A stretch of DNA of 64,000 nt from Oikopleura dioica. Lineage: Eukaryota; Animalia; Chordata. Positions 33,601 through 35,352 of the stretch are shown here, piece after piece. The notes below the pieces were generated by a model, which did not search any database, had not been told where the DNA came from, and saw nothing but the letters and a program-made list of their open reading frames with translations. How positions within the stretch are numbered: position 1 is the stretch's first letter; each line of letters starts with the position of its first letter. The stretch is taken from positions 14,074,001-14,138,000 of the forward strand of contig OU015568.1 of assembly GCA_907165135.1 (NCBI GenBank). The letters are read 5' to 3'. The translations under genes and the position numbers were made by a program.

Positions 33601-35352
33601 TTTAAAAAATAATGAATTATTATCACAACTCCCTGTGATAATCCAATTAATATCTAATTATTGCATTAATAAATTTTAATTGCCAGGGTTAAACAGCTAT
33701 TTCGTGGTCTTGCAAAAAAAAATCTACGACTGATACCTACTTTCAAGTCTCTGTGGACCACGTTATGAACATTGTGGCAGTGAAGAACGGCATCAAGAAT
33801 TTGTTGGATGCACTGGCTAATATATTCAATTGGTGAAAATATTGATTCTATTCTTTTAAAGAAGAAAATGCGATACTATTCCCTCAAAACTTTCGGGGAG
33901 GTGTCTGGAACCGACAAAAAACTTTCGACAAATTTTGCGTGGAAATTTTCAACCAATCAGAAGCCTAGATTCAGCAAACCGGCCAATCAGCAGCCGAGTA
34001 GCCGCCTACGCAAATTTTGTCGAATTTTTTTTGTCGGTTCCAGACACCATCCCAAACTTTCGCCATCAAGATGATTTCTGTATGGCACACAAAACTGATC
34101 AAACAAAAGTTCAAACTTCAAGCTTCCAAGATCAAGCGTGTCACAAAAATGTAAAATTTAGAAATAAAGAATTAACGACGACAATTTCAGCCGGCAAGAT
34201 TTCGTTAAAAAACGATACCCAAGCCTGAATGTCGCGGCAAACTCTTTTCATTCGTGCAAAAACAGAGCGAAAAAACAGGGTTGATCCCGTCTGCTGATTT
34301 CAGACGAGCCCTGCAAGACCGCGTGCCCAAGCTCGGATTCCGAAGACTGATTATTAAGGCACACTGGTTAAGTCAAGTTAACCCGAGGTGGAAATTCTAC
34401 CTTGAGATCTCGGTGAATGACGTTATATGTGTGGATATGTTTCAAACAGTCGAGTACTTGGGAGATGCAGCGACTGTAGCGGAGAGAATTTTAACTGGAG
34501 GTTTTTAAATTTCAATTAAAGAAACGCTCATTTTATTTTCTCCAAAAATGGATTTTCTTCTTGCTTATTTTTCGGCTATTTTACCTGGCATCTGATTCGG
34601 AATAGAACTCGCGCGCAACGATATCTTCGAAAAGCTCGCCTCCAGTCACTCTGAATAATTGACTGTAAGACAACTGTCCCTCTCCTTTCATCCCCATTTC
34701 ACTTTATTATTTTAAATAACTGGAGCGCTTTCCCGGGCCCCTGTCACTTCTGACACTGGCTGCCGATCATCGAGCCAGATATTTGTCAGCGCTGGAGTTA
34801 CTGTATCAATCCGTGGCTCAGAAATCTGACCAAAGTCGAAATAGTCAAAGTGTTTTTCTTGTCTTTGGAGAATTTCCGCGGCTTCGTTTCTAAAAAAGCC
34901 GCTACGCGGCTTTTCATCTTTGCTCTTTCAGACCCTGACTCAGGTTTTCTACTCAGGTTGCCGAGCCCAGCTTCGACCGTGACCCTGTGGACAGGTTTCG
35001 AAGCCCAAACTTACAAATCAAAGACGAGGTAATGGCAGTTGTCGTCCGAGAGGGAGTCATGCAGCCGAACGATGTTCGCGTGGTTGAGCAGTCGGCAGAT
35101 TCGCGCCTCGCGTTCCAATTTTTGATGATCACGCGCCGACAGCTTCCGCGTGTTAATAATTTTCGCTGCGTATTCTTCCCCATTTACTTTCTGAATTCGA
35201 AATCGTGAGAAGCGGCGAACGAGTTCGCCTGTCAGCGGGCGGAAGCTATTTACCTTGACGCAGCGTCTGACGATGGAAAATGCTCCTTTTCCGAGCTCTT
35301 CTTTCAGCTCGTACTCGTCATTGAAATGACCACTGGAGCCGTTGCTCGGCAT
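30682..35352 (-). CDS. CaMKII: Calcium/calmodulin-dependent protein kinase II (kinase, regulatory segment, variable linker, hub domain)
   Basis: [74 protein letters not shown] (T286 and T305/306 equivalents), and hub RKAELIK...FHRFYF...ESRVW...CHFHRS. All traced exons join in phase. Confidence 0.97.
33741..33816 (-). other. CaMKII: CaMKII alternative exon B (76 nt): [25 protein letters not shown]
   Basis: TAG acceptor and GTAGG donor. Starts phase 2 and ends phase 0, matching the flanking exons 34585-34650 and 33374-33476. Confidence 0.92.
33896..34053. mobile_element. 158-bp MITE, Mutator-like by TSD length
   Basis: ~50-bp imperfect TIRs GGGA(G/T)GGTGTCTGGAACCGACAAAAA and a perfect 9-bp TSD AAACTTTCG (33887-33895, 34054-34062). 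Confidence 0.9.
34401..34473 (-). other. CaMKII: CaMKII alternative exon A (73 nt): [24 protein letters not shown]
   Basis: CAG acceptor and GTAGA donor, with the same phases as exon B. Including both exons would frameshift. Confidence 0.9.

Follow-up and report, generated by a model that had tools for sequence, protein, structure and literature searches.

Oikopleura dioica (assembly OKI2018_I69, hereafter Okinawa) has a single CaMKII gene, which contains two adjacent, homologous exons, here called A and B, that encode two versions of the same segment of the kinase core. The segment corresponds to residues 114–137 of CaMKII-alpha and comprises two thirds of helix alphaE, at its C-terminal end, followed by a turn and the HRDLK of the catalytic loop. 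On balance, we favor the reading that A and B are a tandem alternative exon pair, with A likely the default exon, B likely a regulated alternative, and the duplication having probably taken place within the appendicularians. An alternative pair at exon 6 of a CaMKII gene is already known in mammals; the Oikopleura twist, we infer, is that the default role falls to the divergent copy. A literature search found no paper on mutually exclusive exons in the CaMKII of Oikopleura, nor one treating the origin of the exon-6 pair.

The gene lies on the minus strand of the window (the whole stretch of 64,000 nucleotides that was analyzed), with its coding sequence at 35352–30685. The product at the locus is P0124, listed as Oidioi.mRNA.OKI2018_I69.PAR.g12457.t1. 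It has an N-terminal Ser/Thr kinase domain (Pfam Pkinase, residues 14–272, E 2.8e-75) and a C-terminal association (hub) domain (Pfam CaMKII_AD, residues 456–590, E 5.8e-37), and the CaMKII regulatory segment, with its RQET autophosphorylation site and calmodulin-binding motif, was read both in P0124 and in exons 11–12 of the window. That this is the only CaMKII gene is based on a search of the whole OKI2018_I69 genome (64.28 Mb, 19 contigs) with exon 10 as the query, which gave a single match at 100%, with any other hit at 58% or less. The locus is compact, and exons 5 to 7 fall within 1.3 kb. Near its start, a 63-nt intron (35191–35253) that is in-frame and without stops separates exon 1 from the fused exons 2–4, and ORF callers on marine metagenome contigs translate through this intron (P0001, P0002). 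The features of the cluster, in the order of transcription and with exons numbered as in vertebrates, are as follows.

34585..34650, minus strand: exon 5, the common upstream donor; ends with two nucleotides of a Ser codon and matches P0124 exactly
34474..34584, minus strand: intron from exon 5 to A, 111 nt
34401..34473, minus strand: exon A, the divergent version, 73 nt (1 + 24 codons)
33817..34400, minus strand: intron from A to B, 584 nt (213 nt in Bergen)
34148–34133 and 34094–34072: islands in the A-to-B intron that are conserved in comparison with the Bergen locus
33892..34056, no strand assigned: MITE of 165 nt with 49-nt inverted arms, inside the A-to-B intron
33741..33816, minus strand: exon B, the canonical tunicate or alpha/beta-like version, 76 nt (1 + 25 codons)
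33477..33740, minus strand: intron from B to exon 7, 264 nt, containing islands conserved with Bergen
33537..33542, minus strand: UGCAUG (Rbfox-type motif) in the B-to-7 intron, downstream of B
33372..33476, minus strand: exon 7 (PENLLL...AWFG), the common downstream acceptor

When the minus strand was re-read, the coordinates and peptides that an earlier, sequence-only reading had given for A and B proved exact. The two exons have the same phase, as each starts with the third base of the Ser codon and ends after HRDLK. In a genome-wide comparison (64.3 Mb) each was the best non-self match of the other, with 58% identity and an E-value of 0.007. B matched solved CaMKII alpha/beta chains (E 9e-6) with one inserted residue and, as that reading had proposed for it, is of the alpha/beta-like “AVLHCH” type. 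A is more divergent than B, and its best match was a CAMK2 kinase (5ig1, E 7e-4). Taken together, A and B differ at ~10–13 of 24 positions and by one insertion. Both exons have AG/GT borders. They differ in their splice sites: the acceptor of A (...TTCTCTCCGCTACAG) has a good pyrimidine tract, whereas that of B (...GAATATATTAG) is weak and purine/AT-rich in Okinawa and Bergen alike; the donors begin with GTAGAA and GTAGGT, respectively.

These exons have the architecture of a mutually exclusive pair, being adjacent, homologous, similar in length, of the same splice phase and 584 nt apart. In addition, the reading frame enforces exclusivity. Each exon length (73 and 76 nt) leaves a remainder of 1 when divided by 3, and the inclusion of both exons, or of neither, therefore shifts the frame and leads to an early stop. 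As read from the sequence, joining A to B brings a stop seven codons into B, and skipping both exons causes a frameshift.

To determine how the two exons have evolved, we compared the window with the Bergen locus (L023; GCA_000209535.1) and with a metagenome contig from a third lineage (L018). Proportions of synonymous (pS) and nonsynonymous (pN) differences between Okinawa and Bergen, from Nei–Gojobori counts, are given below.

Constitutive exons, pooled (1278 nt): DNA identity 85%, pS 0.60, pN 0.018
Exon A: DNA identity 93%, pS 0.17, pN 0.044
Exon B: DNA identity 96%, pS 0.14, pN 0.016

Introns are essentially saturated between Okinawa and Bergen, except for short islands. The comparison strongly indicates that both A and B are under purifying selection, synonymous sites included, and lowered synonymous divergence is the usual pattern for regulated alternative exons. 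The question of whether A evolves neutrally, which the sequence-only reading had raised, is answered by its pS of 0.17 versus a pN of 0.044 and its 93% identity amid saturated introns: it does not. Deeper comparisons gave a pS of 0.67 and a pN of 0.105 for A against the A-type exon of contig L024, similar to the values for exons 5 and 7, and a pS of 0.8 and a pN of ~0.12 for B against the B-type exon of contig L027, the differences being mainly synonymous. Between A and B in the window, synonymous sites are saturated (pS ~0.95), which indicates that the duplication is old and without recent conversion. Elsewhere in the gene, exon 11 (32857–32940), which encodes the regulatory segment, has a pS to Bergen of just 0.16, whereas the gene stands at 0.60. 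Its synonymous difference is thus down at the level of alternative exons A and B; exon 11 lies immediately upstream of the alternatively spliced linker.

All evidence on usage points to A. The exon is carried by the Okinawa gene model P0124 and by the Bergen UniProt entry P0126, and a JGI metatranscriptome contig from an Oikopleura-like species, a more distant relative, contains an A-type exon within an unbroken 500-aa ORF (L024, 1844 nt; P0122). This contig is direct evidence from spliced RNA, so the concern that A might never be spliced in does not hold. The Genoscope model for Bergen, P0123, concatenates A, a 15-residue filler and B; the chain is a prediction artefact, and the model documents the presence of B in the Bergen genome. 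Exon 6 is not spliced in every time, as seen in a related appendicularian from a Logan transcript contig (SRR10450103, L017, 330–360), in which exon 5 is joined straight to exon 7 and the frame is shifted. A gene caller broke this exon-6-skipped contig into two ORFs.

Three bulk poly-A RNA runs were mapped to the window at 95% likeness. These runs are from a Bergen-like lineage, so called since the loose ends of their reads agree with the introns of the Bergen locus L023. At this likeness coverage was confined to exons 11 and B, and A, which is 93% identical, fell below the countable level. Over B there were ~6–8 reads per run, most of which extended on both sides into intron sequence that matched the Bergen intron. 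The junction check that the sequence-only reading had proposed therefore left A uncounted in these runs and returned no B junction with as many as 3 reads, against 5–68 reads at the exon-11 junction ends. B inclusion in those poly-A samples was low at best. A word search with residues 112–184 of P0123 found no B-only protein of 287–913 aa, and its only Oikopleura matches were P0123, P0126 and P0124. Similarly, a B-specific degenerate DNA pattern retrieved four contigs of other organisms, and no O. dioica B transcript, from the JGI metagenome and metatranscriptome contigs scanned, a set outside which near-identical genomes possibly fall. Three JGI metatranscriptome contigs (L025, L026 and L028) encode CaMKII of a marine organism whose exon 6 is closest to Oikopleura B, and these proteins have long Asn/Ser-rich extensions at the N-terminus and in the linker. 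Overall, the splice switch that had been proposed stands as regards its architecture and the selection on both exons, while a transcript with B alone was not found among the reads, proteins and JGI contigs. It is the conservation of B that suggests its use.

The introns of the cluster are largely saturated, and what is conserved in them is of interest with regard to how the choice between A and B may be made. In the intron from exon 5 to A, the final ~30 nt, comprising the pyrimidine tract and acceptor, are identical in Okinawa, Bergen and L018, and the remainder is saturated. Of the conserved islands of the A-to-B intron, the one at 34094–34072 underlies the filler “exon” (LFCVPSRNHKKRQFD) by which P0123 links A to B; a role in splicing control is more likely for it than a coding one. 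The MITE in the same intron belongs to a family with at least 40 scored copies in the genome (533 candidates), which are scattered and 91–97% identical. It is lineage-specific and missing from the Bergen A-to-B intron, and its absence there explains the difference in intron length, 584 versus 213 nt. A potential looping stem around B (34137–34149 with 33544–33556) spans 13 nt at 85% in Okinawa and only ~6 bp in Bergen, and was rejected as a conserved element.

The intron downstream of B contains one copy of UGCAUG in Okinawa, Bergen and L027, and neither the 5-to-A nor the A-to-B intron contains any; by shuffling, the chance of the motif is about 0.04–0.05 per intron. A UGCAUG downstream of an alternative exon usually favors inclusion of that exon via Rbfox proteins. 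Based on this conserved motif, B may perhaps be a neural or muscle form.

We hypothesize that A, with its good pyrimidine tract, would serve as the default exon, and that B, with its poor acceptor, would need activation and be a regulated alternative that is used rarely or locally. An Rbfox-type factor could turn B on in neurons or muscle through the conserved downstream UGCAUG. Swapping A for B would alter about a dozen residues, on a face of alphaE and in the turn from alphaE to the catalytic loop, and leave the catalytic residues unchanged. Its plausible effect would be on the stability, docking or regulation of the kinase, and not on its chemistry.

The same data bear on a different role for B, which we consider unlikely, in which A would in effect be a constitutive exon and B a conserved regulatory one, for instance a “poison” exon that lowers CaMKII output when included after A. 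Inclusion of both exons does bring an immediate stop, the RNA reads over B do have intronic flanks, and neither the protein searches nor those of the JGI contigs returned a B-only product; a non-productive, exon-6-skipped transcript was also assembled in a relative (L017). However, B has kept its frame, phase, splice sites and a canonical tunicate CaMKII peptide with HRDLK in both Okinawa and Bergen, and most of the changes in the B-type exon of L027 are synonymous (pS 0.8, pN ~0.12). The conservation of B at the DNA level (96%, pS 0.14) is above that of most constitutive exons and typical of poison exons, but the pS of A is lowered as well (0.17), which fits a regulated pair better than a constitutive exon with a decoy. 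A third reading, that one of the two exons is a neutrally evolving, decaying relic of the duplication, is so improbable that we reject it, as its sole point in favor is that B was unseen in transcripts, and A and B have remained 93% and 96% identical, with intact splice sites and frames, amid saturated introns.

Alternative exon pairs within a kinase domain have precedents. JNK (MAPK8/9/10), with exons 6a/6b, and p38alpha, with CSBP1/2, have mutually exclusive exons in the kinase domain. The regulated-pair reading of A and B resembles these in that a segment of the kinase C-lobe is swapped by splicing and the catalytic residues are spared. The JNK and p38alpha pairs differ in belonging to another kinase family and affecting another segment, and the events are non-homologous.

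A much closer likeness is to CAMK2D. The mouse gene Camk2d carries 6A and 6B as mutually exclusive exons, with 6B downstream, and the human 6B is predicted; mouse 6B is minor, at ~10% of olfactory-bulb transcripts and in that tissue only (PMC12060085). Isoforms of the delta gene in Cebus (X19/X20) and Callithrix (X26/X27 and X28/X29) differ in the exon-6 segment alone, and in these primates 6A reads ...ESVNHCHLNGIV... and 6B reads ...EAVLHCHQMGVV..., the latter being identical to alpha/beta. The statement in the sequence-only reading that CAMK2D keeps both versions of exon 6 is therefore borne out, both by the published work on mouse and human and by the Cebus and Callithrix isoforms. In Oikopleura and in CAMK2D, the gene family is the same, the same exon (from alphaE to HRDLK) is present as tandem homologous copies, the “AVLHCH” type is the downstream copy, and one version is the default, apparently so in Oikopleura, and the other, in mouse, minor. 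Unlike in CAMK2D, the apparent default in Oikopleura is the divergent exon, and the canonical exon is the unobserved minor form. The Oikopleura versions also differ more, at ~10–13 of 24 positions plus an insertion versus 6 of 24 in delta. In addition, the use of 6A and 6B is published for mouse, whereas no spliced transcript with Oikopleura B was found in the RNA reads and contigs.

Two types of exon 6 were also found within single mollusc species, in this case from database isoform predictions alone. In Haliotis asinina the types are seen in isoforms X8 versus X7 (P0145 versus P0285), in H. rufescens among X2, X6 and X32 (P0188 versus P0286/P0290), and in a Nucella model, P0242, both occur in series. 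Molluscs thus probably have a mutually exclusive exon-6 pair too, and we found no paper on it. As in Oikopleura, one and the same 24-residue segment occurs in two alternative forms within the isoform set of a species. The mollusc types (ESVNYCH... and EGVNHCH...) are neither of them specifically like A or B.

With regard to the origin of the Oikopleura pair, B is the ordinary tunicate type of exon 6, and the proteins of Phallusia and Clavelina show this DAV type only. Between appendicularians and vertebrates, the locus examined was that of the ascidian Clavelina (L029). It contains a single exon 6; the introns on either side, ~160 and ~185 nt long, are without a second copy, and the exon borders (S/..HRDLK/PEN) are common to Oikopleura and Clavelina. 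A has Asp8 in common with the tunicate type and the Asn-Val before HRDLK in common with Oikopleura B. Across a wider range of animals, Ala9 and Leu11 are common to tunicates and the vertebrate 6B/alpha/beta exons, and Ser9 and Asn11 are found in insects, hemichordates and most molluscs. The rotifer Brachionus is also “DAV”, indicating that Ala9 arises convergently.

The exon-peptide phylogeny that had been proposed did not place A. In a tree of 27 exon-6 peptides, B was in an “AV” group (89/98), which also takes in a rotifer, and A was an isolated long branch without a supported partner. Of three placements of A compared by AU tests, none was rejected (p 0.40–0.46, including 0.43 for A with tunicate B and 0.40 for A with vertebrate 6A/gamma), and these tests on a 24-residue peptide, with 24 columns, have no power. 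From the comparison of these sequences it appears reasonably probable that the pair arose by tandem duplication of a tunicate-type exon within the appendicularian lineage. B would then have kept the ancestral sequence and A would have diverged, and the pair would be parallel to, and not orthologous with, CAMK2D 6A/6B of mammals.

The sequence-only reading had instead held that the pair predates the vertebrate genome duplications, and had linked A to the gamma type by its HIH. The link amounts to one residue in common and carries no weight, and the earlier date found no support, since B is the type seen across tunicates, Clavelina has a single exon 6 and the tree did not place A. Stated in full, the ancient-pair scenario would have an SVN-type exon upstream and an AVL-type exon downstream before tunicates and vertebrates split. 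Both would have been kept in Oikopleura, with strong divergence of the upstream copy, and in vertebrates they would have been partitioned, AVL to CAMK2A/B, SVN to CAMK2G and both to CAMK2D. We regard this as improbable, and yet the order of the copies is in its favor: CAMK2D 6B, identical to the alpha/beta peptide, is downstream of 6A, and the AVL-type B is also the downstream copy in Oikopleura, at the same exon position. Against this are the single exon 6 of Clavelina, with no second copy in its flanking introns, and the DAV-only proteins of Phallusia and Clavelina. The Ala9 and Leu11 shared by tunicate and vertebrate 6B/alpha/beta exons would fit common descent, but Ala9 is convergent in the DAV of Brachionus. 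The AU test does not reject A with 6A/gamma (p 0.40), but in the tree A stands alone on a long branch and pairs with no other exon with support, and its Asp8 and the Asn-Val before HRDLK match Oikopleura B rather than SVN exons. Finally, the two exon-6 types within mollusc species mean that the cluster could be older still.

A two-exon cluster ancestral to tunicates and vertebrates, or even, in view of the mollusc isoforms, to bilaterians, with its roles reversed in Oikopleura, is a doubtful proposition. If true, the genome duplications would have been followed by a sorting of the cluster among CAMK2A/B/G/D. In Oikopleura the fast-evolving upstream copy would have taken over as the default in the kinase core, and the canonical copy would have become a tightly regulated alternative, perhaps Rbfox-dependent and neural.

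Whichever origin applies, a tandem pair at this position is of importance for the CaMKII family. CaMKII diversity is usually credited to the variable linker. A splice switch within the catalytic core has been documented only recently, in mouse Camk2d. Oikopleura, with a single CaMKII gene, a compact locus and a transparent body whose cell lineages are mapped, is a tractable organism for studies of the effect of swapping alphaE and the turn before the catalytic loop, and of how the choice between the two exons is made. As the Oikopleura versions differ far more than the mammalian pair, a biochemical difference between them should be more readily detected. That exon-6 pairs recur in mammals, molluscs and appendicularians suggests that this segment is a preferred point for tuning the kinase, whether by descent or by convergence.
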